DNA of 64,000 nucleotides from Bugula neritina (Eukaryota; Animalia; Bryozoa), in the NCBI GenBank assembly GCA_964035545.1, contig OZ037767.1, positions 19,918,628 to 19,982,627 on the forward strand, read 5' to 3'. Position 1 is the stretch's first letter, and the number at the start of each line of letters is the position of its first letter. The notes beneath the pieces were generated by a model. The model did no database searches and was not told the DNA's origin. It saw only the letters and a program-made list of their open reading frames with translations. The translations under genes and the position numbers were made by a program. Of this stretch, positions 1,110 to 62,746 are shown piece by piece.

Positions 1110-4100
1110 AACCTCCAGGGAAGAAGAAACGCAGGTCACCCAGACGGGTACCGCGTACTGGCAACCAACAGTGGCAACAGCCACGACGGACCAGCAAGGG
1201 GCTTCGCCCCGCAGCTGCCTTTTCTATGCCCCTTCACAACAGATTCACAGGGCTACAAGTCCAAGAATCTGGATGGGAGCCCACAAAGGTAGCTGAGAAT
1301 CTAGCCTCGGCACCCCCGAGGCCTACCTACCACCGCCCTAAGAGACCTCCTTCGCGACCCAAAGCGAGGGAGGTACTCCCTGCGAGAGTAAGGCCTGAAG
1401 GGAGAGTTCAGGTGCAGCCCCATGGGAACAGCTATTTCTTGCCCGGTAAACTGGAAGGCAAAGCTGTTACTTTCCTCATTGATTCGGGCTGTACCACAAA
1501 CCTCTTAAGCCGCCAACTCTTCGACACCCTCAGTACTAGGGTCAAGGGCGAGATGGAAGCATACGAAGGGGAATACGGCACCCTCGCTGACGGGTCGTGC
1601 CTTCCCTTCTATGGTATAATTGAGCTGACGGGACGAGTCCGTGATCAAACGATCCAAGAGACGTTCATCGTCAGTCAGCTCAAGGAGGATGCTATCCTCG
1701 GGATGCCGTTCCTTAAACGGCACGGATGTCACATAGATTTTAGCAGATCTGCAATGATGATGTCCGGGCGGGAACTCGCCTGCGTCGACAAGTTCGGCCG
1801 CCCTTTAGTGGGAGGTGTGCAAGTGGTACGCAACCGTATCATACCAGGCCGCTCCCGGGCTACCATTCACTGCAGGGTGAATAGTAGCCGGATCTCTGGA
1901 CTCGGGGTGGTTGAAGGCGCGCACGAAAAGATCCAACTTGCCAGCAGTCTGAATCAGCTGACTGAGCAAGGGGAGATCTTAGTGCAGTGTGTCAACCCCT
2001 TTACCGAGCCTATCAAGCTCCCGGCTGGGTCGATGCTGGGCCGTTTTCACTCTGTTCAGGAGGGAGACGTAGGCCCGTCGCTGGGTGATGCGACGGAGGC
2101 ACCCCCTCAGTGCCCTATTCAGGGACGGGGGGCAGTCCCAACACATCTCCGGGAGTTATACGAAACAGCCAGTGGCGGCTGCGCGAGTAACAAAGAACGC
2201 CAAGCTATGGCTAAGTTACTACGCGACTACGGTGATGTGTTCAGCAGCGGAGAGCATGACGTGGGACTGACTGGAATTGTCAGACACGAAATACCGCTGA
2301 CTGCAGGGACAGTCCCTGTCCGGCAGCCCACACGCAGGCTGGGGCCGGAGAAAGAGAAGGAGGTTAGCCGACAAGTACGAGATCTTCTGGACCGGGGACT
2401 GATAGAGCCCGCCCATAGTGCGTGGAGCTCGCCAGTCGTACTGGTCCGGAAGAAAGACGGCAGTTGGCGGTTCTGTGTGGACTACCGCAAACTCAATAGC
2501 GTAACCATACAGGACGCCTACCCTCTACCTCGTATTGACGAGTCATTGGACGCCCTAGCCGGCAGCAAGTACTTCAGTACGTTAGACTTGCTAAGCGGCT
2601 ATTGGCAGGTTCCTCTGAGTCCCGACGCCCAAGAGAAAGCGGCGTTTATCACACGGGACGGTTTGTGGAAGTGGAAGGTGCTGCCCTTCGGGTTAACCTC
2701 CGCCCCAGCCACCTTCCAGAGGCTGATGGAGCAAGTCCTTAGCGGACTCCATTGGAAGACACTGCTGGTCTACCTCGATGATGTCATCGTAATCTCTCCA
2801 GACTTTGAGACACATGTCAGTCGTCTGCAGGAGGTTTTCGAGAAACTCCGAGGTGCCGGTCTTAAGCTCAAACCTTCCAAGTGCGCTCTATTGCAGCCGG
2901 AGGTCAAGTATCTGGGGCACGTTGTCGGTCGAAACGGCGTGGCAACGGATCCCGAAAAGGTACGGGCAGTAGAAGACTGGGTCACCCCCAAGACTTGACC
3001 GGACTCCGGGCTTTCTTGGGGCTGGTAGGGTATTACAGGCAATACATACCAGACTTTGCGGGCATAGCCCAGCCGTTAAACCGGCTCACCGCAAAGGGGG
3101 TGACGTGGCAGTGGACTCCAGTCGAACAAGAAGCGTTCGACCGCCTCAAGGGCTGCCTACTAACGGCACCCATCTTGGCCTACCCAGACCCCACTCTGGA
3201 GTACATCCTGGACACGGACGCCAGTGACCAAAATGTTGGCGCTGTGCTGTCACAAGTGCAGGAAGGCCGAGAGGTAGTAGTAGCCTACTACAGCAAGTCT
3301 CTCTCACCCGCTGAACGAAATTACTGCACTACCCGCAAGGAGCTGCTGGCAGTAATCAAGTCAGTGAAGCACTTCAGACCATACCTATATGGCAGGAAGT
3401 TCCGGCTGCGTACGGATCATGCCTCGCTGATCTGGTTGTGCAGGAGAGCAGAGCCCTCTAGTCAGGTCGCCCGGTGGCTCGAAATCCTAGCTGAATTCTC
3501 ATACCGGATCGAACATCGACCGGGCAAGAGACACAGCAATGCGGATGGGTTGAGTCGCCGACCTGACGGAGGTTGCAAACAGTGTCTCAACATCGAGAGG
3601 AGGGATGGAGGTCCCCCGCGATGCGAGTTGGAGACGCTGGCTCATCACGGAGCACCGTTTGACTGGGATCAAGGTCAACTCAGGCAAAGAGTTGATGAGT
3701 CCCCGGAGGATGTACAAAACCTCCGCGCCAACCCTGTACTGGCCGGTAATGTTCGAGAGCTGAAGAAGCTCCAAGAAGAGCTGCCTGGAGTCGTGGCAGA
3801 CATATACCGGGCCAAAAGGGAAGGGCGACGACCCAGCGAGGAACGCATACGACAGGGATGCGCCGAGTTCCGGCTATACTGTCAGCGTTGGGACTCGCTG
3901 CGGATCGGGCAGGATGGGTTGCTAACCATCTCTCTAGCTGCCAGCGGCAGACACCCGGAAAGGAAGAGGGTAGTCTGCCCCACAGCCATCCGCCGTGAGT
4001 TGATTTGGGATACTCACAAGCAGGCCCACGCAGGGGTCAAGCGAGTGATATCCAAATTACGACTCCGGTGGTATTGGCCACAAATGGAGCGTGATGTCCG

Positions 4101-32332: not shown

Positions 32333-33276
32333 TATTTGAAAACTCCAAACCAGGACAAACCAAAATTACGCAAGCAATGCAGCCCAGCTTTGCACCCCAT
32401 TAATAATGCTTGGTCACACATGCACATCAATATAATGTGATTTCTATTTTTGAGAAGCCTGATTTGGCAATTCATAATCCATAGAGAATGGAATTTGTGG
32501 ATCACCAAGTTTGTCAATCATGCCATTTTTAAAACGCAATTGGGCACTCGTGGGAGAGCCAATTTCAGGACTGCTGGATAATCAGTTATACACAACTGCC
32601 CCAGGAAATGGAGCTGCATTGCATTTACCTCTGCGATTTACAGTAAAGCAATAACTGGAAAGAACTGGTTGAGCAGTTTGAATACTGTTGGCTTCCCTAT
32701 TTAGGAGGCTAAAGAAACATGTTTTTGTTATTTCATAACCTAATACAACAGCCATGGACAGGATGTACAGTGCATTATAGAGGCTAGCCTAGCCGGAAAT
32801 CATAACTATAAGCATCTGAGTAAAGCTCTATATTTTTATTTAAGGGGATTTTATCTTTTGGTTATTTCCAGTTTATGGAGTTTTTTCAATTGCCTTGCAG
32901 AAGGAAGTTGTGATTTGGTGGGAGGTTTAGAATTATCAATAAGTCACAAGTACAGCTATTAAATTTTATTATATATAAAAATCAACAAGCATAAATAACC
33001 ATCAGGATTGTATTCTGCACAACATTCTAAATGAGAAAGCCAAAAGTTAACAGAGGTACTATCAAATCTAACAGATTGCCAATTGAGTGATGTAGCAGGT
33101 TGCTGGTGTCATGACTCAGAACATTGCACTTTCAGTTATACTTGTACGGACTGTCTTGAAGTTGGTAAGGACTAGGTAGATCAGGAGGAGCATCCAACAA
33201 ATCTGCAGGTAAGAGCAGCAGGTGATAGAATATGAGAATACAGAGTCAGTCTACCAGCTAATAGTAAAGAATATAC

Positions 33277-33353
33277 TCAGGTGTTCATTGGATATCCTCA
33301 CTAAACTACAGTATGACTGTATTATACTCAGAGTGAGCTAGGTGTATCATCAT
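33277..33353 (-). ncRNA. SNORD29: Box C/D snoRNA, SNORD29/snR71-like, copy 1
   Basis: ATGATGA-TACACCTAGCTCACT-CTGA...GTGAGGA-TATCCAATGAACAC-CTGA. Shares CTAGCTCACT and ATGAACACCTGA with vertebrate U29; targets the A in 28S GUGAGCUGGG. Confidence 0.9.
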
Positions 33354-33530
33354 TCTATATTCTACTGTCTCAATACATGTTTCCGGTACATTATCAACAC
33401 TCACCATGTTCAATACATCATATTATATCAGCTCATAGAGACGCAGCCAATTCCTACAAAAGAGGAAATAAACTAATGAAAGAGAACTACCACTGACTAT
33501 ATAATAACATGTAGTTGAGAAGTAACTGCT

Positions 33531-33593
33531 TCAGAAAGTACCAATCAGCATGGATTAATAAGAGAGCTGGGTTTAGCTAAGGCTGATCATCAT
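33531..33593 (-). ncRNA. Box C/D snoRNA, snR69-like, copy 1
   Basis: C box ATGATGA, D' CTTA, C' ATGCTGA, D CTGA. Guide CTAAACCCAGCTC pairs with 28S GAGCUGGGUUUAG; the +5 rule gives the C2948 equivalent (yeast numbering). Confidence 0.88.
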
Positions 33594-33813
33594 TGCAAGC
33601 TACATGTACATTCTACTAAGCAACATAAGACTCTCGCTTACCAGACACTTGCCAAGAACTCAACCAGATATGTACTAGCAAGTAATATTTCGCAAAGACA
33701 CTGGTGATATATACTCATGGAGACGTGGCCAACATCTACAAGAGGAAAAACAACAGTAAGAGAAAACAACTACCACAAACTACATAATAACACGTAATCG
33801 TGGAGTAACTGCA

Positions 33814-33876
33814 TCAGAAGGTACCAATCAGCATGGATTAATAAGAGAGCTGGGTTTAGCTAAGGCTGATCATCAT
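33814..33876 (-). ncRNA. Box C/D snoRNA, snR69-like, copy 2
   Basis: Same boxes and guide; terminal stem ACTGCA/TGCAGT. Confidence 0.88.
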
Positions 33877-34210
33877 TGCAGTAGAAAACTAATGAAACAT
33901 GAAGCCAATTTGAACCATAAAAATTCATGCAAGAGGAGATTGTAGATTTTAAAAACAGAATAAAGTTTTTTAATAAATAATTACTGAAAAAAACCTTTGC
34001 TGTTTTATAAGCACTTGCAGTATAAAAGAAAATTTCCCAGAGTTACCTTACCTCATATTAATACCAGTATTTCTACCAAATTCACACATCAGGAAATAGC
34101 AGATGATATAATAAGGCTGGTGGGTCAACTACAAAACACACAGTAACTCAGTGTACAATTCAATAAACAGCTCACTGAGAGGAGAGGAGATAACTATGAC
34201 AGACTGGGCC

Positions 34211-34271
34211 TCAGTAAGTTTGGTATACAATATCAGCAGTGACTCAGTAGCAGAACTGAAAGTATCATCAT
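34211..34271 (-). ncRNA. SNORD38: Box C/D snoRNA, SNORD38/snR61-like, copy 1
   Basis: ATGATGA-TACTTTCAGTTCTGCTA-CTGA; CAGTTCTGCTACTGA is as in vertebrate U38 and pairs with 28S AGCAGAACUG; terminal stem GGGTT/GGCCC. Confidence 0.88.
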
Positions 34272-34632
34272 TAACCCAGAAGTCATGGCAGCAGAAACAC
34301 AGGTGAATGTTTAGCATTTAGGGACTAGATGTCGAGTCATCACTCAGGGTTGGGGATAAATGTCAGGTGGTCAAACCAGCAAATTATTAAAATGAAAGGT
34401 TGACAACGCCTATAAAATACCAAAATACTTATATAATTTACAGACTTACCAAAGAGATTACTAGCCAACACAATAGGATGCACTGTTAGTGCATGTGCAC
34501 ACTGACCGTCTTGAAGTGGGTAAGGACTAGGTAGATCAGGTAGGAGCATCCAACAAATCTGCAGGTAAGAGCAGCAGGTGATAGAATATGAGAATACAGA
34601 GTCAGTCTACCAGCTAATAGTAAAGAATATAC

Positions 34633-34709
34633 TCAGGTGTTCATTGGATATCCTCACTAAACTACAGTATGACTGTATTATACTCAGAGTGAGCTAGGTG
34701 TATCATCAT
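34633..34709 (-). ncRNA. SNORD29: Box C/D snoRNA, SNORD29-like, copy 2
   Basis: As copy 1. Confidence 0.9.
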
Positions 34710-34890
34710 TCTATATTCTACCGTCTCAATACATGTTTCCGGTACATTATCAATACTCACCATGTTCAGTACATTATATTATTATGAGCTCATGGAGATG
34801 TGGCCAACATCTACAAGAGAGGAAATACACTGGTAAAAGAAGACAACTACCACAGACTATATAATAACAAGTAGTCATGGAGTAACTGCT

Positions 34891-34953
34891 TCAGAAGGTA
34901 CCAATCAGCATGGATTAATAAGAGAGCTGGGTTTAGCTAAGGCTGATCATCAT
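34891..34953 (-). ncRNA. Box C/D snoRNA, snR69-like, copy 3
   Basis: Same boxes and guide. Confidence 0.88.
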
Positions 34954-35049
34954 TGCAGTAGAAAGCTAATGAAACAATTTGAACCATAAAAAATCATGCA
35001 AGAGGAGATTGTAGCTTTTAAAAACAGAATAAAGTATTTTAATAAATAA

Positions 35050-35106
35050 TAAGTTTGGTATACAATATCAGCAGTGACTCAGTAGCAGAACTGTAAGTAT
35101 CATCAT
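35050..35106 (-). pseudogene. SNORD38-like copy 2, truncated (D box lost at a deletion junction)
   Basis: C box and D' guide are present; the 3' end is replaced by AT-rich sequence. Confidence 0.7.
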
Positions 35107-35179
35107 TAACCCAGAAGTCATGGCAGCAGAAACACAGGTGAATGTTTAGCATTCAGGGACTAGATGTCAGGTCATCACT

Positions 35180-35536
35180 CAGGGTTGGGGTCCATTACAT
35201 GTGAATGTAATTATTTACAATTACATGAAAATTTGTCAATTACAATTGCTATCAAACTGGACAAACAGGAGTGATATAATCTCACCAACTATCGAAGGCA
35301 GATTTCACATGAGAGAAACTTCTTTGTTATTAATTAATAGGGTGATACAATACTACATTTAAGCAATCGGAGCTTTCTATTGACCGGTAGGAATGGTAGA
35401 AAATGTATTAATTTCATACAACTTAAAAATTTGAAGCAACTGTCATGTAATTATAATTAAGTAATTGTAAAAATCAATTACATTAGCAATGTAATTGATT
35501 ACAATTTTATAAATCAATTACAATCCCCCAACTTCA
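35180..35536. mobile_element. hAT-like MITE co-amplified with the snoRNA array (also 37658-37997 and 40952-41291; fragments at ~39763-39838 and ~40143-40218)
   Basis: Termini CAGGGTTGGGG...CCCCAAC(C/T)T; many AATTACA subterminal repeats. Confidence 0.6.
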
Positions 35537-35741
35537 GTCATTAGACCCAACAAATTGCTAGAAAATTGACAGTAAATCTCTGAAATATTAAATATTCATA
35601 AAAACCTACCCTAGTATTTGGCAAATCACTCTTGATGGATTCGCTTAGATGTGGCCAATTCCTACAAGAGAGGAAATAAACTAATGAAAGAGGAGAACTA
35701 CCACAGACTATATAATAACATGTTGTCGTGGAGTAACTGCA

Positions 35742-35804
35742 TCAGAAAGTACCAATCAGCATGGATTAATAAGAGAGCTGGGTTTAGCTAAGGCTGATCA
35801 TCAT
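35742..35804 (-). ncRNA. Box C/D snoRNA, snR69-like, copy 4
   Basis: Same boxes and guide. Confidence 0.88.
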
Positions 35805-36027
35805 TGCAAGCTAAATGTACATTCTACTAAGCAACAGAAGACTTAAGCTTACCAGACACTTGCCAAGAACTCAACCAGATATGTACTAGCAAGTAATATC
35901 TCGCAGAGACACTGGTGATATAAACTCATGGAGACGTGGCCAACATCTACAAGAGAGGAAACATACTGGTAAAAGAGGAGAACTACCACAGACTAAACAA
36001 TAATAAAGTAGTCGTGGAGTAACTGCA

Positions 36028-36090
36028 TCAGAAGGTACCAATCAGCATGGATTAATAAGAGAGCTGGGTTTAGCTAAGGCTGATCATCAT
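36028..36090 (-). ncRNA. Box C/D snoRNA, snR69-like, copy 5
   Basis: Same boxes and guide. Confidence 0.88.
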
Positions 36091-36448
36091 TGCAGTAGAA
36101 AACTAATAGAGGTTGAAGTCAATTTGAACAAGAAAAGGTTACATAAAAGCAGCTGTAGATTTTAAAAACACAAGAAAGCATCCTATAAAAAATAATAAAT
36201 GAATGAAACAAAAGCAAAATATATAAAGTTTAACAGCACTGCTTTAAAAAATTTGACAAGACACAAGAAAATACTCAGGAGTTACCTTACCTCATAATAA
36301 TATCGAAATTTTATCAAAATCACACATCAGGAAATAGCAGGTGATATAATAAGGCTGGTGGGTCAACTACAAAACACACAGTAACTCAGTGTACAATTCA
36401 ATAAACAGCTCACTGAGAGGAGAGGAGATAACTATGACAGACTGGGCC

Positions 36449-36509
36449 TCAGTAAGTTTGGTATACAATATCAGCAGTGACTCAGTAGCAGAACTGAAAG
36501 TATCATCAT
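36449..36509 (-). ncRNA. SNORD38: Box C/D snoRNA, SNORD38-like, copy 3
   Basis: As copy 1. Confidence 0.88.
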
Positions 36510-36870
36510 TAACCCAGAAGTCATGGCAGCAGAAACACAGGTGAATGTTTAGCATTTAGGGACTAGATGTCGAGTCATCACTCAGGGTTGGGGATAAATG
36601 TCAGGTGGTCAAACCAGCAAATTATTAAAATGAAAGGTTGACAACGCCTATAAAATACCAAAATACTTATATAATTTACAGACTTACCAAAGAGATTACT
36701 AGCCAACACAATAGGATGCACTGTTAGTGCATGTGCACACTGACCGTCTTGAAGTGGGTAAGGACTAGGTATATCAGGTAGGAGCATCCAACAAATCTGC
36801 AGGTAAGAGCAGCAGGTGATAGAATATGAGAATACAGAGTCAGTCTACCAGCTAATAGTAAAGAATATAC

Positions 36871-36947
36871 TCAGGTGTTCATTGGATATCCTCACTAAAC
36901 TACAGTATGACTGCATTATACTCAGAGTGAGCTAGGTGTATCATCAT
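36871..36947 (-). ncRNA. SNORD29: Box C/D snoRNA, SNORD29-like, copy 3
   Basis: As copy 1. Confidence 0.9.
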
Positions 36948-37128
36948 TCTATATTCTACCGTCTCAATACATGTTTCCGGTACATTATCAATACTCACCA
37001 TGTTCAGTACATTATATTATTATGAGCTCATGGAGATGTGGCCAACATCTACAAGAGAGGAAATACACTGGTAAAAGAAGACAACTACCACAGACTATAT
37101 AATAACAAGTAGTCATGGAGTAACTGCT

Positions 37129-37191
37129 TCAGAAGGTACCAATCAGCATGGATTAATAAGAGAGCTGGGTTTAGCTAAGGCTGATCATCAT
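37129..37191 (-). ncRNA. Box C/D snoRNA, snR69-like, copy 6
   Basis: Same boxes and guide. Confidence 0.88.
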
Positions 37192-37523
37192 TGCAGTAGA
37201 AAGCTAATGAAACAATTTGAACCATAAAAAATCATGCAAGAGGAGATTGTAGCTTTTAAAAACAGAATAAAGTATTTTAATAAATAATTACTGAAAAAAA
37301 ACCCTTTGCTGTTTTATAAGCACTTGCAGTAAAAAAGAAAATATCCTAGAGTTACCTTACCTCATATTAATACCAGTATTTCTACCAAAATCACACATCA
37401 GGAAATAGCAGGTGAGATAATAAGGCTGGTGGGTAACCCAACTACAAAACACACAGTAACTCAGTGTACAATTCAATATACAGCTCACTGAGGGGAGAGA
37501 AGATAACTCTGACAGACTGGGCC

Positions 37524-37584
37524 TCAGTAAGTTTGGTAAAGAATATCAGCAGTGACTCAGTAGCAGAACTGAAAGTATCATCAT
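37524..37584 (-). ncRNA. SNORD38: Box C/D snoRNA, SNORD38-like, copy 4
   Basis: As copy 1. Confidence 0.88.
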
Positions 37585-38209
37585 TAACCCAGAAGTCATG
37601 GCAGCAGAAACACAGGTAAATGTTTAGCATTCAGGGAGTAGATGTCGAGTCATCACTCAGGGTTGGGGTCCATTACATGTGAATGTAATTATTTACAATT
37701 ACATGAAAATTTGTCAATTACAATTGCTATCAAACTGGACAAACAGGAGTGATATAATCTCACCAACTATTGAAGGCAAATTTCACATGAGAGAAACTTC
37801 TTTGTTATTAATTATTAGGGTGATACAAAACTACATTTAAGCAATCAGAGCTTTCTATTCACTGGTAGGAATGGTAGGAAATGTATTAATTTTGAAGCAA
37901 TTGTCATGTAATTATAATAAAGTAATTGTAAAAGTCGATTATATTAGCTATGTAACTAATTACAATTTTATATATCAATTACAATCCCCCAACCTTAGTC
38001 ATTAGACTCAACAAATTGCTAAAAAATTGACAGCAAAATCTAAAAATATTAAACAGTTTATATTCATAAAAACCTACCATAGTATTTGGCATATCACTTC
38101 TAGTGTATTCACCTAGAGATGGTCAATTCCTACAAGAAAAGAAATACACTGGTAAAAGAAGACAAGTACCACAGACTACATAATAACAAGTAGTTGTGAA
38201 GTAACTGCA

Positions 38210-38272
38210 TCAGAAGGTACCAATCAGCATGGATTAATAAGAGAGCTGGGTTTAGCTAAGGCTGATCATCAT
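38210..38272 (-). ncRNA. Box C/D snoRNA, snR69-like, copy 7
   Basis: Same boxes and guide. Confidence 0.88.
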
Positions 38273-38999
38273 TGCAGTAGGACACTAATGAGACATAAAG
38301 TCAACTTGAAGCATAAAAATTCACATAAGAGAAAATCTAGATTTTAAAAACAATGTCAATAAACAAAAAGCCAAAGATCTCTAAACAGAATAGATATTCA
38401 CACAGATCAGCAACCAAATCTTGGCACAGACCCTGTAACAGGACTATATTGCGTCGATTTCATACATCAATAATCACTGCAAATAGTTTTTGAGATAGTG
38501 ATTTAATTGGCCAAGCTGTATTTAAAGACTCCACTTTTTATTATTAGTATTTTCCCATCAACTGAGGATTTCGAATGGGATTTCTGAACAAAATAATGCA
38601 ACAGAGGCAGCAAATTCATTCTAAAACAATTGAATATCAGAGATTTGTTCTAATTGGAAATGTATGCGTGGTAGGTAACTTTAGCAGCAGATTTGCACTA
38701 AATATGGTTTCTAGGCAAATCTGACTTTATCTGACCGGACTATTAGACAACATAAGAAGACAAGCAAATTAAATACATAGTCGAATAATCAATAGCTACC
38801 TGTATGAACAAACGTTAGTAGATTCATCAACAGTACAGGCTTATATATCAGGCATTGTAATAGAGTATGGCAGAGGTGAGTCTTCCACTTATACAGGACT
38901 TCTGGTGGGTAACCCAACTACAAAACACACAGTAACTCAGTATACAATTCAATATACAACTCACTGAGGGGAGAGAAGATAACTCTGACAGACTGGGCC

Positions 39000-39060
39000 T
39001 CAGTAGGTTTGGTATACAATATCAGCAGTGACTCAGTAGCAGAACTGTAAGTATCATCAT
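39000..39060 (-). ncRNA. SNORD38: Box C/D snoRNA, SNORD38-like, copy 5
   Basis: As copy 1. Confidence 0.88.
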
Positions 39061-39416
39061 TAACCCAGAAGTCATGGCAGCAGAAACACAGGTGAATGTT
39101 TAGCATTCAGGGACTAGATGTCAGGTCATCACTGCAGGGTTGGGGTCAAATGCCAGGTCATCAAACCAGCAAATTATTAAAACGAAAGGATGCCTATAGA
39201 ATACCAAAATACTCATATAATTTACAGACTTACCAAAGAGATTACTAGCCAACACAATAGGATGCACTGTTAGTGCATGTGCACACTGACCGTCTTGAAG
39301 TGGGTAAGGACTAGGTAGATCAGGTAGGAGCATCCAACACACCTGCAGGAAAGAGTACCAGGTGATAGAATATGAGAATACAGAGTCAGTCTACCAGCTA
39401 ATAGTAAAGAATATAC

Positions 39417-39493
39417 TCAGGTGTTCATTGGATATCCTCACTAAACTACAGTATGACTGTATTATACTCAGAGTGAGCTAGGTGTATCATCAT
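39417..39493 (-). ncRNA. SNORD29: Box C/D snoRNA, SNORD29-like, copy 4
   Basis: As copy 1. Confidence 0.9.
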
Positions 39494-39673
39494 TTTATAT
39501 TCTACCGTCTCAATACATGTCTCCTATACATTATCAATACTCACCATGTTCAGTACATCATATTATATCAGCTAATGGAGACGCAGCCAATTCCTACAAG
39601 AGAGGAAATACACTGGTATAAGAAGACAAGTACCACAGACTACATAATAACAAGTAGCCATGGAGTAACTGCA

Positions 39674-39736
39674 CCAGAAAGTACCAATCAGCATGGATTA
39701 ATCAGAGAGCTGGGTTTAGCTAAGGCTGATCATCAT
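39674..39736 (-). ncRNA. Box C/D snoRNA, snR69-like, copy 8 (D box CTGG, D' CTGA)
   Basis: Guide intact; box variants. Confidence 0.75.
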
Positions 39737-40053
39737 TGCAGTAGAAAACTAAGAGAAGTTGAAGTAATTGCAAAAGTCGATTACATTAGCTATTTAATAA
39801 TTACAATTTTATATATCAATTACAATCTTCCAACCTTAGTCATTAGACCCAACCAATTGCTAAAAAAAAATTGACAGCGAAACTTTAAAATAATAAATAG
39901 TTTATATTCATAAAAACCTACCATAGTATTTGGCATATCACTTCTAGTGTATTCACTTAGAGATGATCAACTCCTACAAGAGATGAAATACACTGGTAAT
40001 AGAAGACAAGTACCACAGACTATATAATAACAAGTAGTCATGGAGTAACTGCA

Positions 40054-40116
40054 TCAGAAAGTACCAATCAGCATGGATTAATCAGAGAGCTGGGTTTAGC
40101 TAAGGCTGATCATCAT
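40054..40116 (-). ncRNA. Box C/D snoRNA, snR69-like, copy 9 (canonical D' CTGA)
   Basis: Guide intact; both D and D' are canonical. Confidence 0.88.
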
Positions 40117-40429
40117 TGCAGTAGAAAACTAAGAGAAGTTGAAGTAATTGCAAAAGTCGATTACATTAGCTATTTAATAATTACAATTTTATATATCAAT
40201 TACAATCTTCCAACCTTAGTCATTAGACCCAACCAATTGCTAAAAAAAAATTGACAGCGAAACTTTAAAATAATAGTTTATATTCATAAAAACCTACCAT
40301 AGTATTTGGCATATCACTTCTAGTGTATTCACTTAGAGATGATCAACTCCTACAAGAGATGAAATACACTGGTAATAGAAGACAACTACCACAGACTATA
40401 TATTAACAAGTAATCATGGAGTAACTGCA

Positions 40430-40492
40430 TCAGAAGGTACCAATCAGCATGGATTAATAAGAGAGCTGGGTTTAGCTGAGGCTGATCATCAT
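40430..40492 (-). ncRNA. Box C/D snoRNA, snR69-like, copy 10
   Basis: Same boxes and guide. Confidence 0.88.
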
Positions 40493-40817
40493 TGCAGTAG
40501 AAAAATAATGAGACAATTTGAACCATAAAAATTCATGCAAGAGGAGATGTAGATTTTAAAAACAGAATAAAGTTTTTTATTAAATAGTTAATTAAAAAAA
40601 CCTTTGCAGTTTTATAAGCACTTGCAGTATAAAAGAAAATATCCCAGAGTTACCTTACCTCACATTAATACCAGTATTTCTACCAAAATCACACATCAGG
40701 AAATAGCAGGTGAGATAATAAGGCTGGTGGGTCAACTACAAAACACACAGTAACTCAGTGTACAATTCAATATACAACTCACTGGGGGGAGAGAAGATAA
40801 CTCTGACAGACTGGGCC

Positions 40818-40878
40818 TCAGTAAGTTTGGTATACAATATCAGCAGTGACTCAGTAGCAGAACTGAAAGTATCATCAT
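40818..40878 (-). ncRNA. SNORD38: Box C/D snoRNA, SNORD38-like, copy 6
   Basis: As copy 1. Confidence 0.88.
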
Positions 40879-41503
40879 TAACCCAGAAGTCATGGCAGCA
40901 GAAACACAGGTGAATGTTTAGCATTCAGGGACTAGATGTCGAGTCATCACTCAGGGTTGGGGTCCATTACATGTTCATGTAATTATTTACAATTACATGA
41001 AAATTTGTCAATTACAATTGCTATCAAACTGGACAAACAGGAGTGATATAATCTCACCAACTATTGAAGGCAAATTTCACATGAGAGAAACTTCTTTGTT
41101 ATTAATTAATAGGGTGATACAATACTACATTCAAGCAATAGGAGCTTTCTATTAACCAGTAGGAATGGTAGGAAATGTATTAATTTTGAAGCAATTGTCA
41201 TGTAATTATAATAAAGTAATTGTAAAAGTCAATTACATTAGCTATGTAACTAATAACAATTTTATATATCAATTACAATCCCCCAACCTTAGTCATTAGA
41301 CCCAACCAATTGCTAGAAAATTGACAGCAAAACCTAAAAATATTAAATAGTTTATATTCATAAAAACCTACCATAGTATTTGGCATATCACTTCTAGTGT
41401 ATTCGCTTAGAGATGATCAACTCCTACAAGAGAAGAAATATATTGATAACAGAAGACAACTACCACAGACTACATCATAATAAGTAGTCATGGAGTAACT
41501 GCT

Positions 41504-41566
41504 TCAGAAGGTACCAATCAGCATGGATTAATAAGAGAGCTGGGTTTAGCTAAGGCTGATCATCAT
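41504..41566 (-). ncRNA. Box C/D snoRNA, snR69-like, copy 11
   Basis: Same boxes and guide. Confidence 0.88.
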
Positions 41567-42294
41567 TGCAGTAGAAAACTAATGAGACATGAAGTCAACT
41601 TGAAGCATAAAAATTCACATAAGAGAAAATCTAGATTTTAAAAACAATGTCAATAAACAAAAAGCCAAAGATCTCTCAACGGAACAGATATTCACACAGA
41701 TCAGCAACCAAATCTTAGCAAAGACCCTTCAAAAGGACTACATTGCAACGATTTCATACATCAATAATCACCGCAAATAGTTTTTGAGATAGTGATCTAA
41801 TTGGCCAAGCCGTATTTAAAGACTCCACTTTTCATCATTAGTATTTCCCCATCAATTGAGAATGTCAAATAGAATTTCTGAACAAAATAATGCAGCAGAG
41901 GCAGCAAATTCATTCTATAACAATTGAATACCAGAGATTTGTTCTAATTGGAAATGTATGCGTGGCAGGTAACTTTAGCAGCAGATTTGCACTAAATATG
42001 GTTTCTAGGCAAATCTGACTCTATCTGACCGGACTATTAGACAACATAAGAAGACAAGCAAATTAAATACATAGTCAAATAATCAATAGCTACCTTGTAT
42101 GAACAAATGTTAGTAGATCCATCAACAGTACAGGCTTATATATCAGGCATTGTAATAGAGTATGGCAGAGGTGAGTCTTCCACTTATACAGGACTTCTGG
42201 TGGGTAACCCAACTACAAAACACACAGTAACTCAGTATACAATTCAATACACAACTCACTGGGGGGAGAGAAGATAACTCTGACAGACTGGGTC

Positions 42295-42355
42295 TCAGTA
42301 GGTTTGGTATACAATATCAGCAGTGACTCAGTAGCAGAACTGAAAGTATCATCAT
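42295..42355 (-). ncRNA. SNORD38: Box C/D snoRNA, SNORD38-like, copy 7
   Basis: As copy 1. Confidence 0.88.
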
Positions 42356-42715
42356 TAACCCAGAAGTCATGGCAGCAGAAACACAGGTGAATGGTTACAT
42401 TTAGGGAGTAGATGTCAGGTCATCACTCAGGGTTGGGGTCAAATGTCAGGTCATCAAACCAGCAAATTATTAAAATGAAAGGATGACAACGCCTATAGAA
42501 TACCAAAATACTCATATAATTTACAGACTTACCAAAGAGATTACTAGCCAACACAATAGGATGCACTGTTAGTGCATGTGCACACTGACCGTCTTGAAGT
42601 TGTTAAGGACTAGGTAGATCAGGTAGGAGCATCCAACACACCTGCAGGAAAGAGTACCAGGTGATAGAATATGAGAATACAGAGTCAGTCTACCAGCTAA
42701 TAGTATAGAATATAC

Positions 42716-42792
42716 TCAGGTGTTCATTGGATATCCTCATTAAATTACAGTATGACTGTATTATACTCAGAGTGAGCTAGGTGTATCATCAT
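42716..42792 (-). ncRNA. SNORD29: Box C/D snoRNA, SNORD29-like, copy 5
   Basis: As copy 1; C' is ATGAGGA. Confidence 0.9.
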
Positions 42793-42973
42793 TCTATATT
42801 CTACTGTCTCAATACATGTCTCCTATACATTATCAATACTCACCATGTTCAGTACATTATATTATTATGAGCTCATGGAGATGTAGTCAACATCTACAAG
42901 AGAGGAAATACACTGATAAGAGAGGACAACTACCACAGACTATATAATAACAAGTAATTGTGGAGTAACTGCA

Positions 42974-43036
42974 CCAGAAAGTACCAATCAGCATGGATTA
43001 ATAAGAGAGCTGGGTTTAGCTAAGGCTGATCATCAT
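42974..43036 (-). ncRNA. Box C/D snoRNA, snR69-like, copy 12 (D box CTGG)
   Basis: Guide intact; D box mutated. Confidence 0.72.
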
Positions 43037-43362
43037 TGCAGTAGAAAACTAATGAAACAATTTGAACCATAAAAATTCATGCAAGAGGAGATTGTAGATT
43101 TTAAAAACAGAATAAAGTTTTTTAATAAATAATTAATTAAAAAAACCTTTGCAGTTTTATAAGCACTTGCAGTATAAAAGAAAATATCCTAGAGTTACCT
43201 TACCTCACATTAATACCAGTATTTCTACCAAAATCACACATCAGGAAATAGCATGAGATAATAAGGCTGGTGGGTCAACTACAAAACACACAGTAACTCA
43301 GTGTACAATTCAATACACAACTCACTGGGGGGGGGGAGAAGATAACTCTGACAGACTGGGCC

Positions 43363-43423
43363 TCAGTAGGTTTGGTATACAATATCAGCAGTGACTCAGT
43401 AGCAGAACTGAAAGTATCATCAT
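43363..43423 (-). ncRNA. SNORD38: Box C/D snoRNA, SNORD38-like, copy 8
   Basis: As copy 1. Confidence 0.88.
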
Positions 43424-43638
43424 TAACCCAGAAGTCATGGCAGCAGAAATAATGATAGTTTATACAAACTCACCATAGAAGTGGGTTGAATCCCCAGTTA
43501 TATTTATATAGAGTCAGTTCTGAAGCCGGTGACAAACTTATGGAGACGCAGCCAATTCCTACAAGAGAGGAAATACACCGATAAGAGAGGACAACTACCA
43601 CAGACTACATAATAACAAGTAGCTATGGAGTAACTGCA

Positions 43639-43701
43639 TCAGAAGGTACCAATCAGCATGGATTAATAAGAGAGCTGGGTTTAGCTAAGGCTGATCATCA
43701 T
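43639..43701 (-). ncRNA. Box C/D snoRNA, snR69-like, copy 13 (first intron of the host gene)
   Basis: Same boxes and guide. Confidence 0.88.
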
Positions 43702-44083
43702 TGCAAGCTACATGTACATTCTACTAAGCAACAGAAGACTTTAGCTTACCAGACACTTGCCAAGAACATGAACCAGATATGAGATACTAGCAAGTAATAT
43801 CTCGCAGAGACATCGGGTAAGAAAGATTTGATGCGCAGATGGGTTCGCCACAGAGTTTCAGGCTGAAATACAAATCAAGGAACTGCAATAAATTCGGTTA
43901 GGTGTACGGAAACTGAACATGGATAATGTATAATGAAACTGAACTCACCTCACAGTAGAAATCATAAGCAAAGCAGACAAACAGAATATTACAAGATTGG
44001 ATTACGTTTGCCTATCAACTTTATTGATAAACTATCATAAGATGGTAAAAAGACAATTTTCAAAACAAAACAGCAACTCAGAT

Positions 44084-46246
44084 CTATGCATCTCCTGCTG
44101 CCAACTTCTTCAGGAAAGACTCCTTCTTCTGTTTGACACGGTCTTTGCGTTGAGCAAGGTTCATCTTGGCTCTGTTCCACCTGAAAAACCAACCAGAAAC
44201 ATACTTGATTCGTTCCCATCAAGAGGAAAACCAATTCTGACATTCCCGAAGTTGCTACAGGTTACAGCACTGCCAGGTATTACAAACTGTCAGTTAACAA
44301 TTTGAGAAAACAAAAAATTAAATCTCCTTACCTCTTGACCTTGACATCCTTCTTCTCGGTAGTTTTGGCTGCTGGATCAGCTCTGATGGCAGCGTGAACC
44401 TTCTTGTACAACTCCTCGAGGTTGTCTGCGCTCACACCCAGCTTGATGTACTTACCAAACTGCTTCTGGTAAGCTTCAGAGTCTTCATCCTGCAAAAAGA
44501 TACTCACATTGCATTCCTTTCATCACTGCATCTGCAAGGAGTGACAATGGATAGACTAGTCTAACAGATATACCTGGAGATGGGTCATGTAGGCAGCAAC
44601 ATGTCCTCCCATGATGTGCTTTCGGTGAGTCTCGGCATCAAACTGTCCACTTTCAGCATCGTAGCCGGGAAATCTCTTCACACTGACAACACACAGAGAC
44701 GCGTACAGCCACAAGCTTGATTTGAAATGACACCAGAAAGTGGGAGTTGTTAGATTAAAGTACAGGCGAGGCAGGTCGTAGATCAGCTCACCCATGTGGA
44801 ATGTCTAGCCCTCCATCGGCAGCACCTTTCATGGCTCCGAACACTCTGGCACCAGTAGTTGTGCGGACCAGACCAACATCAAGGAAAGCTCTGAATGGAC
44901 CAGGCTGGTCATCTAGAGCCTCTACGTTGTATTCATCACCATCAACCTCTTCCTGACCTGCATACAGGCCGTCTAATTTATACTTCTGGAGCAGACGTCT
45001 TGTGAGCAAGAGTCCAGTGCAGTATGCAGCAGCATAGTTTGTCAACCCGACCTTCAAGCCATATCGAGGGAGCTCGTGGGCATATGCAGCGCACACGATC
45101 ACGTCTCCTTCAATTCTGGCGTAAGCTACCTGCAAGTACAACACATGCATTAGTACAGAGGTAGAGGTAGATATATGTAGGCTCACTCGGTATAGCAAGT
45201 AGAAGATCTAAATGCTAATGGAATGGAGCCCAGTGGTTTTGCACCCATTTCCATGCGAGAAGAGTCAACAAATACTTTCCCGCTTGAACAGCAAAGTGCA
45301 ACAATAAAATCAGAAAGATATTAGCATCGTTTTATTGTCGACAAAACTTTTTTGAATAGAAAACTAAATCCAAATGCTTACTTGGCAGATGATGTCTTTG
45401 TTTGTGAAACGGACAATCAATCTAAATTTAGGGGTGTTGTACTTGTTTTTTTCTTGAACCACTAGGCGACGACGAGCATAGTAATCGGTTTTTCCTTCTC
45501 GTCTCCTTCTGAACTTGACTTGAAATCGTTTAAAATACGCCTTATTCTTTACAACTTTCACAAACCCCGTCTACAACATATACATTACTGCAGGTTTAGA
45601 GGTTGAGGTATTACAGTCTGCTAAAAAGCTAAGAGAAAACTAAACAGAACTTGATAAAATATACACCAGGTGCTTGAGTAGCAATTTTAGAATAAGTCAA
45701 TAACAAATTGAATAAGGTATCAATTGTTTTACAAAGGTATCTTTAATTTCAAGTCTGGAAATGCTGGAATATATTCAATAAAGTTGAATATTAAATCGAA
45801 ATATTCAACTAACTAAATGCCTAATAATAGTAATACTTTTAATAATAGCAATTACTTAGCAATGGCCACAGACAACAGTGATTTTGATGGTCATACTCAG
45901 TACTCATGAGTCATAGTACCACTGCCACACTGGTCGATAATATTGATCTTAGCTACCACTAAATACTAATACTACTAATACTATACATCGTGATTGAAAT
46001 GATAACGACCAGTACGGTATGACCAGCAATCACAACCAATTCTAACAGCCAAAATGCTAGCAATTTCAGTGCCGAGAACACGTTTATCGTTCACACTTTG
46101 ATTGAGATTTAAACGCAATTTTAATCCTGCCTCATCCATTGCAAATGTTTAATAGCTGCAAAGTTTAAACTTTTTATGGCAACCTAAATAAGTTAGGCAA
46201 CCTTATCCAAAACTTAATTTACTGCTACATGCAAACTACTTACCAT
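44084..46246 (-). CDS. RPL5: 60S ribosomal protein L5 (uL18); exons 46246-46244, 45570-45382, 45129-44792, 44682-44574, 44489-44332, 44180-44084
   Basis: [38 protein letters not shown]...[15 protein letters not shown]...DGGLDIPHG; canonical splice sites; pyrimidine start motif CCTTTTCC at 46314-46307; AATAAA at ~44020. Confidence 0.98.

Positions 46247-47392: not shown

Positions 47393-55094
<7,702 letters not shown>

Positions 55095-59007: not shown

Positions 59008-62746
<3,739 letters not shown>

Follow-up and report, generated by a model that had tools for sequence, protein, structure and literature searches.

The question raised by this locus is what kind of gene, if any, occupies about 11 kb on the minus strand behind RPL5 of Bugula neritina, and how it came to hold so many copies of a few small RNAs. 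In the 64,000-nucleotide stretch that was analyzed (the window), the minus strand between 33271 and 43707 carries 26 box C/D snoRNA copies of three families, 13 snR69-like (A), 5 SNORD29-like (B) and 8 snR61/SNORD38-like (C), and all positions and counts given in an earlier note on this DNA were recovered (Table 1). The copies lie in 25 predicted introns, which alternate with predicted exons of 49-119 nt, each interrupted by stop codons in two or more frames. A GT donor closes every predicted exon and the AG acceptors are preceded by a pyrimidine tract, which supports the proposed exon/intron modules. The distance from the D box to the predicted 3' splice site, previously put at about 75-85 nt, was found to be 74-84 nt in all 25 introns. 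Furthermore, the predicted terminal exon contains an AATAAA motif, and RPL5 indeed adjoins the array upstream on the same strand. Taken together, this anatomy points to a snoRNA host of the UHG/GAS5 type, one that is spliced but encodes no protein, a reading that we consider likely.

Of the 26 copies, 23 show a C box, a D box, a terminal stem of 5-6 bp and internal D'/C' boxes. The three defective ones are two A copies with the D box CTGG (at 43036 and 39736) and one C copy that is truncated before the D box (at 35106). Scanning with Rfam models at gathering thresholds (GA) returned none of the 26 copies. In E-value mode, snR61 gave eight matches (33.5 bits for the truncated copy, 40.7-44.7 for the other seven; GA 45), SNORD29 five (30.5-31.4 bits, GA 48) and snR69 two weak ones (24.2 bits, GA 50). 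The low scores of family B can be attributed to a 22-nt internal insertion, and those of family A to its limited match with the yeast-based model, which extends to the C box and a 13-nt guide core and no further. The near-threshold matches fall in the expected families, and the three assignments made earlier are upheld, at sub-threshold scores.

The D' guides pair with the 28S rRNA of the species itself, as had been anticipated, in duplexes of 11-13 bp that begin at the second nucleotide upstream of D'. The nucleotide opposite the fifth position upstream of D' is A1294 for family C, A3326 for B and C3328 for A, equivalent to A1133, A2946 and C2948 in yeast. In the peptidyl-transferase region, A3326 and C3328 follow the A-loop UG at distances of 24 and 26 nt on its 3' side, a spacing that equals the one in yeast between G2922 and A2946/C2948, the snR71 and snR69 sites (PMC10899779). 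For the D-side guides no convincing rRNA target was found. Whole-genome searches (216 Mb) placed all copies of the three families at this locus only, and revealed no other credible guide for A1294, A3326 or C3328.

From this arrangement we infer a pathway in which Pol II would transcribe about 11 kb and each of the 25 introns would yield a box C/D snoRNA. The 74-84 nt spacing suggests that snoRNP assembly is coupled to splicing; the debranched introns would then be trimmed by exonucleases, leaving the exon-only RNA as a by-product. The three families would direct 2'-O-methylation by fibrillarin at their respective 28S nucleotides.

Table 1. Features of the RPL5 3' end and the predicted snoRNA host gene (positions in the window).
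Feature	Position	Strand	Remark
RPL5 last coding exon	44084..44181	-	stop TAG 44086-44084; translation; Pfam L5e / L18_c on neighbouring exons
RPL5 poly(A) signal AATAAA	44020..44025	-	conserved in L006/L007
Predicted short intron, RPL5 3' end to host 'exon 1'	43863..43948	-	
Donor GAG/GT of predicted short intron	43949/43948	-	acceptors end at 43883 or 43863
Host 'exon 1'	43750..43862	-	5' limit uncertain: acceptor 43862/43882 or TOP-like start 43825
snoRNA A1	43633..43707	-	snR69-like, guide to 28S C3328
Predicted exon	43474..43558	-	
snoRNA C1	43357..43429	-	snR61/SNORD38-like, guide to 28S A1294
Predicted exon	43204..43278	-	
snoRNA A2	42968..43042	-	D box CTGG, probably defective
Predicted exon	42844..42893	-	
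snoRNA B1	42710..42798	-	SNORD29-like, guide to 28S A3326
Predicted exon	42533..42641	-	
snoRNA C2	42289..42361	-	
Predicted exon	42094..42212	-	weaker donor GTAGCT
snoRNA A3	41498..41572	-	
Predicted exon	41372..41423	-	
snoRNA C3	40812..40884	-	
Predicted exon	40659..40735	-	
snoRNA A4	40424..40498	-	
Predicted exon	40298..40349	-	
snoRNA A5	40048..40122	-	D' box canonical CTGA
Predicted exon	39922..39973	-	
snoRNA A6	39668..39742	-	D box CTGG, probably defective
Predicted exon	39545..39593	-	
snoRNA B2	39411..39499	-	
Predicted exon	39234..39342	-	
snoRNA C4	38994..39066	-	
Predicted exon	38800..38917	-	weaker donor GTAGCT
snoRNA A7	38204..38278	-	
Predicted exon	38078..38129	-	
snoRNA C5	37518..37590	-	
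Predicted exon	37361..37441	-	
snoRNA A8	37123..37197	-	
Predicted exon	36999..37048	-	
snoRNA B3	36865..36953	-	
Predicted exon	36688..36796	-	
snoRNA C6	36443..36515	-	
Predicted exon	36291..36366	-	
snoRNA A9	36022..36096	-	
Predicted exon	35853..35946	-	3' part = copy of host exon 1
snoRNA A10	35736..35810	-	
Predicted exon	35610..35661	-	
snoRNA C7	35050..35112	-	pseudo-copy truncated before D box, in A11's intron
snoRNA A11	34885..34959	-	
Predicted exon	34761..34810	-	
snoRNA B4	34627..34715	-	
Predicted exon	34450..34558	-	
snoRNA C8	34205..34277	-	
Predicted exon	34052..34128	-	
snoRNA A12	33808..33882	-	
Predicted exon	33642..33735	-	3' part = copy of host exon 1
snoRNA A13	33525..33599	-	
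Predicted exon	33405..33453	-	
snoRNA B5	33271..33359	-	
Predicted terminal exon	32945..33202	-	AATAAA 32970-32965; 3' end approximate

How such a host gene came to be amplified can be read from its own repeats and from a more distant relative (L008). Multi-module segments have been duplicated as blocks with 93-96% identity. In L008, one SNORD29 (50 bits, above GA 48), one snR61 (46 bits, above GA 45) and one snR69-like snoRNA occupy consecutive predicted introns behind RPL5, with conserved guides and a D-box-to-acceptor spacing of about 73-76 nt as read by eye. Because each snoRNA is present there as a single copy, the amplification is lineage-specific, and this relative provides direct evidence for it. 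The ancestral gene would have contained one copy per snoRNA, and repeated segmental duplications of multi-module blocks in the Bugula neritina lineage would have led to 13 + 5 + 8 copies, 23 of them seemingly intact. Both the block duplications and the single-copy locus bear out the shuffling and amplification of modules that had been suggested. The idea that amplification served to raise the dose of the guides fits less well, since the CTGG variant is found at equivalent positions of a 2.7 kb block duplication: the dead D box was copied together with its block, and selection for function therefore does not account for all of the duplications. Any dosage benefit is putative.

A start of its own is putative for the host, which is predicted to begin no more than about 200-270 nt from the RPL5 poly(A) signal; the earlier note likened it to UHG/GAS5-type hosts, which are 5'TOP genes. 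However, the TOP-like motif (43825-43815) carries a 5-nt deletion in a sibling lineage (L006/L007), and a strong donor with acceptors is located between the RPL5 poly(A) signal and 'exon 1'; therefore an upstream mini-exon or read-through from RPL5 is as possible as an own TOP start. It is possible, in our view, that the whole array belongs to a lengthened RPL5 transcription unit instead of forming an independent gene and that the TOP promoter of RPL5 drives the snoRNAs. Transcription would continue past the poly(A) site, the donor about 70 nt beyond the signal would be spliced to 'exon 1', and the resulting RNA, in which the stop codon would precede many junctions, would be a substrate for NMD; in an operon-like variant the acceptor would receive a spliced leader. 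This is in line with the sequence of this donor (GAG/GTGAGT) and the two good acceptors that follow it, a set which is kept in the sibling lineage and has a similar counterpart in L008 and behind RPLP0, with the partial loss of the TOP-like motif, with the conserved linkage of RPL5 and host in L008 and with another amplified C/D array that adjoins RPLP0 downstream. On the other hand, efficient cleavage is expected at the RPL5 3' end, where a canonical AATAAA is followed by a GU-rich element, a short own-start first exon between poly(A) site and donor accounts for the same signals, and conservation of the interval does not exceed that of RPL5 introns. As a separate observation, intron 2 of RPL5 carries an H/ACA snoRNA.

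We regard it as unlikely that the array is a mostly neutral repeat which expands and decays by unequal crossing-over, with few copies processed and no dosage meaning of the copy number. The three defective copies and the CTGG passenger of the block duplication would be expected of such a repeat. The claim that bodies are invariant as flanks diverge holds strongly for family A, where 7 of 75 body columns but 31 of 68 flank columns are variable (Fisher p = 1e-6) and the pairwise distance among the 13 copies is 0.033 in bodies versus 0.146 in flanks; in families B and C it is a trend that is not statistically significant, which would suit such a repeat. The constraint on family A, together with guides that are identical in 25 of 26 copies and a D box that is intact in 23, argues against neutrality.

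Elsewhere among eukaryotes, producing snoRNAs from polycistronic clusters is well established. The dense head-to-tail arrangement on one strand would suit a splicing-independent cluster as in plants, yeast and trypanosomes, in which snoRNAs are released by endonuclease cuts and trimming and the splice-like signals are irrelevant. We consider this very improbable, as every unit combines a consensus GT donor with an acceptor and pyrimidine tract at 74-84 nt, and L008 retains the spacing despite its diverged sequence. In animals such a spacing is a hallmark of C/D snoRNP assembly that is coupled to splicing, as Hirose and Steitz reportedly described in 2001. Finally, it is hardly credible that a short repeat was expanded during assembly: short-read contigs do break up within the array, but the large blocks are distinguishable copies, with 4-7% divergence and junctions of their own, the array unitigs of X1, a sample that may be identical to the assembled one, reach 1-5 times the single-copy depth of 103x, fitting several near-identical copies, and sibling-lineage contigs from two other samples break exactly at the array start.

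The predicted spliced host gene can be compared with several known systems. The vertebrate and Drosophila non-coding hosts UHG/SNHG1, GAS5 and Drosophila Uhg1-8 likewise carry a single snoRNA in each intron, between short exons in which no reading frame is conserved. Their C/D snoRNAs also lie about 70-80 nt away from the 3' splice site, and these genes too have grown through duplications within the gene. Seven Uhg lncRNA hosts are listed for Drosophila (PMC11014333), and a gas5-like host has been called a hotspot of snoRNA expansion (PMC2653536), a paper that also mentions tandem repeats in imprinted regions. In contrast to these hosts, the Bugula gene reaches 26 copies with no more than three families, a single canonical rRNA guide being present up to 13 times. 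It is the only genomic source of its guides, and begins at most about 200-270 nt from the RPL5 poly(A) signal with a putative TOP start and putative expression. Tandem exon/intron/C/D units with dozens of copies per non-coding transcript are known from SNORD115/SNORD116 (SNURF-SNRPN) and SNORD113/114 (MEG8). The repeat unit is the same in Bugula; however, those snoRNAs are tissue-specific, imprinted orphans without rRNA targets, whereas in Bugula the guides are ancient canonical 28S guides and three types of module are mixed in a mosaic.

Yeast snR69, snR71 and snR61 and human SNORD29 and SNORD38 have the same guide cores and, by position, the same target nucleotides (PMC10899779), and the accessory elements GAACnCCUGA (SNORD29) and UACCAAA (snR61) of the Rfam consensus recur in the Bugula copies. 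The latter differ in scoring below the Rfam gathering values, in the much shorter A compared with the yeast snR69 model and in the insertion in B, and they are intronic, whereas the yeast snR genes are independent. Vertebrate RPL5, host of SNORD21 and SNORA66, resembles the Bugula arrangement in that snoRNA output would be coupled to a TOP-regulated ribosomal protein gene, and the H/ACA snoRNA in RPL5 intron 2 is a further similarity, but the Bugula array follows the poly(A) signal and is outside the RPL5 introns. The rarity that had been ascribed to the locus is thus overstated in view of the documented intragenic duplication (PMC2653536), the imprinted arrays and the second amplified C/D array directly behind RPLP0 in the same genome. 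The design of the gene is already known from UHG/GAS5-type hosts, intragenic snoRNA duplication and SNORD115/116-style arrays, and what is unusual here is the strong amplification.

The window carries 26 box C/D snoRNA copies on its minus strand between 43707 and 33271, which fall into three families: the snR69-like family A, the SNORD29-like family B and the snR61/SNORD38-like family C. When each family was searched with BLAST in the whole genome (216 Mb; 216,009,554 bases), 13, 5 and 8 copies were returned, the numbers an earlier note had counted by reading the sequence, and all of them are located in the array. Mature box C/D snoRNAs are stable RNAs of 60-100 nt that bind fibrillarin, Nop56, Nop58 and Snu13. 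As box C/D snoRNAs we regarded copies in which a terminal stem joins a C box (RUGAUGA) close to the 5' end with a D box (CUGA) close to the 3' end; 23 of the 26 copies possess all of these elements, with terminal stems of 5-6 bp. The three damaged copies are two members of family A with CTGG as D box (at 43036 and 39736) and one member of family C at 35106, which ends before the D box. A scan of the window with Rfam at the gathering thresholds (GA) gave no match, but the E-value mode returned matches to the three families expected from the earlier note. In this mode snR61 (RF00476, GA 45) matched eight times, with 40.7-44.7 bits for seven copies and 33.5 bits for the truncated one, so all copies score below the threshold, the best only just. 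SNORD29/snR71 (RF00070, GA 48) matched five times at 30.5-31.4 bits, and snR69 (RF00475, GA 50) reached 24.2 bits in only the two copies with a canonical D' box, both again below GA. The alignments indicate that family B stays below its threshold because of a 22-nt insertion and family A because the yeast-derived model is much longer. Explained by this insertion and by divergence, the absence of matches at the gathering thresholds does not count as an argument against the snoRNAs. Most family C snoRNAs are preceded, at a distance of about 70 nt, by a conserved GTGATGA...CTGA motif, which may be what is left of a lost snoRNA or may serve in processing.

Guides were accepted if they showed at least about 10 bp of rRNA complementarity abutting the D or D' box, with the target opposite the fifth nucleotide, and the 28S reference was the own rDNA of B. 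neritina from the same genome. The D' guides of all three families pair with this 28S, over 13 bp in A and 11 bp each in B and C, which bears out the complementarity anticipated in the earlier note; the second nucleotide upstream of D' is the first paired position in each case. The family B guide CUAGCUCACU is identical to the SNORD29/snR71 consensus, and the A2946-equivalent of the LSU rRNA is the own A3326. For the family A guide UAAACCCAGCUCU, all 13 of 13 core positions agree with the Rfam snR69 consensus and the target is the C2948-equivalent. Identity to the snR61/SNORD38 consensus was also found for the family C guide UCAGUUCUGCU; its target is the A1133-equivalent, and the own A1294 is, going by the family name, what we take to be yeast A1133. 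A3326 and C3328 are both located 3' of the A-loop UG, at 24 and 26 nt. In yeast, snR71 and snR69 methylate A2946 and C2948, and the spacing from G2922 is the same as in the own 28S (PMC10899779), in line with the two sites 2 nt apart in the peptidyl-transferase region that the earlier note names. The second guides at the D side gave no rRNA match exceeding that of shuffled guides. Short pairings beside the primary targets, seen by eye for family C (7 bp at 28S 1284-1290) and family B (6 bp on the A-loop), may represent accessory contacts or chance.

Features of the array, its 5' end and its predicted targets (window positions unless 28S is stated)
Feature	Position	Strand	Description
RPL5 stop codon	44086-44084	minus	
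RPL5 AATAAA	44025-44020	minus	
Consensus donor	43949/43948	minus	predicted
Acceptors	ending 43883 and 43863	minus	predicted
TOP-like CTTTCTTACCC	43825-43815	minus	
Exon 1 donor	43750/43749	minus	predicted
Family A		minus	13 copies, ~75 nt; C box AUGAUGA, D' CUUA (CUGA in 2 copies), D CUGA, 6-bp terminal stem
Family B		minus	5 copies, ~89 nt; guide and 3' element match the SNORD29 consensus
Family C		minus	8 copies, ~73 nt; guide and 3' element match snR61/Z1/Z11 (SNORD38 group)
Family A guide	own 28S 3325-3337		position-5 target C3328
Family B guide	own 28S 3323-3333		position-5 target A3326
Family C guide	own 28S 1291-1301		position-5 target A1294
GTGATGA...CTGA motif	42426, 40950, 39132, 37656, 36581, 35178, 34343	minus	upstream of family C copies
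Self-match	37043-39752 and 40344-43052		2.7 kb block, 94.5% identity
Self-match	33446-35050 and 35654-37288		1.6 kb block, 93.2% identity
Self-match			380-bp tandem, 96.5% identity
MITE-like element	about 40951-41350; paralogous stretches about 37650-38080 and 35170-35600		long introns

The surroundings of the copies are consistent with a non-coding host gene. Each D box is followed by a pyrimidine tract and a predicted AG acceptor at a distance of 74-84 nt, which agrees well with the approximately 75-85 nt reported beforehand. A spacing this uniform between snoRNA and 3' splice site is known to mark the coupling of C/D snoRNP assembly to splicing. Each predicted acceptor opens a stretch of 49-119 nt that ends at a consensus GT donor, and from this donor it is 48-527 nt to the next C box. 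In the predicted gene model, the first exon ends at 43750 and the terminal exon, which has an AATAAA at 32970-32965, begins at 33202; between them are 24 internal exons. Among its 25 predicted introns, 24 contain one snoRNA copy, and the remaining one combines the truncated family C copy with an intact family A copy, because a deletion took out the intervening exon. Every predicted exon, assessed singly and unjoined, contains stop codons in at least two of the three frames. For annotation this means that an apparently junk repeat of 11 kb is explained.

The array has grown by duplication of blocks (see the self-matches in the table), and parts of exon 1 and intron 1 have been duplicated into its interior. 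The two family A copies with a CTGG D box sit at corresponding places in the 2.7 kb duplication, and therefore the defective copy was amplified as a passenger. In family A, divergence per site is 0.033 in the snoRNA bodies versus 0.146 in the next 68 intron bases, and 7 of 75 columns are variable in the bodies versus 31 of 68 in the flanks (p = 1e-6). The earlier observation of nearly invariant bodies and diverging flanks thus stands for family A, but the trend in families B and C, which points in the same direction, is not significant. That the array is an assembly expansion, a reading that would have spoken against the earlier note, is unlikely, because the blocks are distinguishable with differences of 4-7%, the unitig depth in the array amounts to 1-5x the single-copy value of 103x, and sibling-lineage contigs from two other samples break exactly at the array start. 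The three sequencing runs available came from one study, are of unrecorded type and behave as DNA. The long introns also contain a high-copy, MITE-like element rich in short inverted repeats; its contig depth exceeds 10,000 in runs X1 and X2 and is 3,100-3,900 in X3, the single-copy depth in X1 being about 100.

A pattern search for C box plus guide core in the rest of the genome yielded background only, and ten inspected candidates for other guide genes were rejected since they have no D' box, D box and terminal stem. As all BLAST copies are located in the array and the candidates outside lack these boxes and stems, the array is the only recognizable source in the genome of the predicted guides for the conserved methylation of 28S at three sites, two of which are neighbors in the peptidyl-transferase region.

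Relatives were found by a search with the large RPL5 exon. Two contigs (L006 and L007) with a 97% identical RPL5 exon and about 84-90% identical nucleotides probably represent a sibling type of a species complex; they are collinear with the window through RPL5 and host exon 1, and then the contigs end. Two further contigs from metagenome assemblies (L008 and L009, RPL5 exon 86% identical) belong to a more distant relative. In L008, single snoRNA genes follow immediately after the stop codon and AATAAA of RPL5, in the order SNORD29 (50 bits), snR61 (46 bits), both above GA, and an snR69-like C/D gene, whose guide has the same spacing as in family A together with a canonical CTGA D' box. Each of them lies, by eye, about 73-76 nt before a predicted acceptor. 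In comparison with the window, the guide cores and the 3' elements of B and C are kept and the remainder has diverged. This arrangement shows that the linkage between RPL5 and the host gene is old, and it looks like the unamplified ancestral state. The contrast between single copies in L008 and 26 in B. neritina also substantiates the amplification of modules proposed before.

A second amplified C/D array is located behind RPLP0 on the minus strand of another stretch of the same genome (G000:C1:20271500-20281499). The distance from the RPLP0 poly(A) signal to its start is about 400 nt, and it contains one family with four copies and another with five; therefore, snoRNA amplification is not unique to the RPL5 locus. 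Rfam identified no further snoRNAs near the RPL5-linked array or in RPL5. Conservation and folding revealed an H/ACA-type candidate without Rfam match in RPL5 intron 2 (45166-45301, minus strand), with two hairpins, the hinge AAACCA, an ACA near the 3' end and a fold z-score of -4.6; the sibling lineage matches the surrounding stretch at 98-100% identity, and L008 retains the pocket and box elements of the candidate. RPL5 itself has a TOP-like start CCTTTTCC at about 46305 on the minus strand, and downstream of it intron 1 (45830-45990, minus strand) contains short AGT/ATT tracts with a periodicity of 3 or 6 bases.

The two loci raise the question whether arrays immediately behind RPL5 and RPLP0 are transcriptionally coupled to the ribosomal protein genes. 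For the start of the host RNA we lean toward an own promoter squeezed behind RPL5. A TOP-like CTTTCTTACCC precedes the exon 1 donor, but in the sibling contigs this element is partly lost through a 5-nt deletion. Read-through from RPL5 is a less probable but serious alternative, and what remains falls to other readings including a trans-spliced unit. The donor and the two acceptors upstream of the TOP-like element, a set kept in the sibling contigs, suggest another first exon, and a like donor occurs shortly after the poly(A) signal at the L008 RPL5 gene and at the RPLP0 locus. A more general idea, which we consider rather doubtful, is that amplified C/D arrays of bryozoans trail ribosomal protein genes with high expression, either sharing the TOP promoter of such a gene through read-through transcription or forming an operon-like downstream unit. 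If so, the supply of guides for the peptidyl-transferase region would be coupled to the synthesis of ribosomal proteins, and copy amplification would compensate for the few polymerases that pass the poly(A) site.

Apart from the snoRNA genes, the window contains a (GT)n microsatellite of about 500 bp (50839-51340) and an exon-like open frame (60985-61392, minus strand) that resembles, by eye, a glutathione transferase of the Xi-class/glutathionyl-hydroquinone reductase type. The mitochondrial contig of the assembly spans 15.25 kb, and its COX1 has in-frame TGA and AGA at conserved serine positions. A nearly full COX1 copy with the same TGA pattern (G000:C6:11174072-11175412) is probably a nuclear mitochondrial insert; the other COX1-bearing contigs (C17, C214 and C73) may derive from other organisms, and C17 is free of internal stops.

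It is established that non-coding genes can host multiple snoRNAs and that snoRNAs duplicate within genes (PMC2653536, PMC11014333). The kind of gene is thus already known, and the novelty lies in the phylum, in how far canonical guides have been amplified, in the exclusivity of the locus and in its position directly behind a ribosomal protein gene; our literature search found no paper describing bryozoan snoRNAs. The array is a clean natural example of host gene growth, from a three-snoRNA ancestor, a state still found in the relative, to 26 copies by block duplication. With hosts of the UHG/GAS5 type it shares, according to the predicted splice sites, the many introns with one snoRNA each at a favored distance, as well as short exons lacking a coding frame. 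Hosts of this type typically start at a 5'TOP motif and yield a spliced, polyadenylated and unstable, NMD-sensitive RNA. Imprinted loci of mammals also contain tandem arrays of exon-intron-snoRNA units, and the predicted architecture resembles the SNORD115/116 arrays in combining such units in one non-coding transcript. SNORD115/116, however, are orphan snoRNAs with imprinted and tissue-specific expression, whereas the guides of the B. neritina array have canonical targets in the 28S rRNA.
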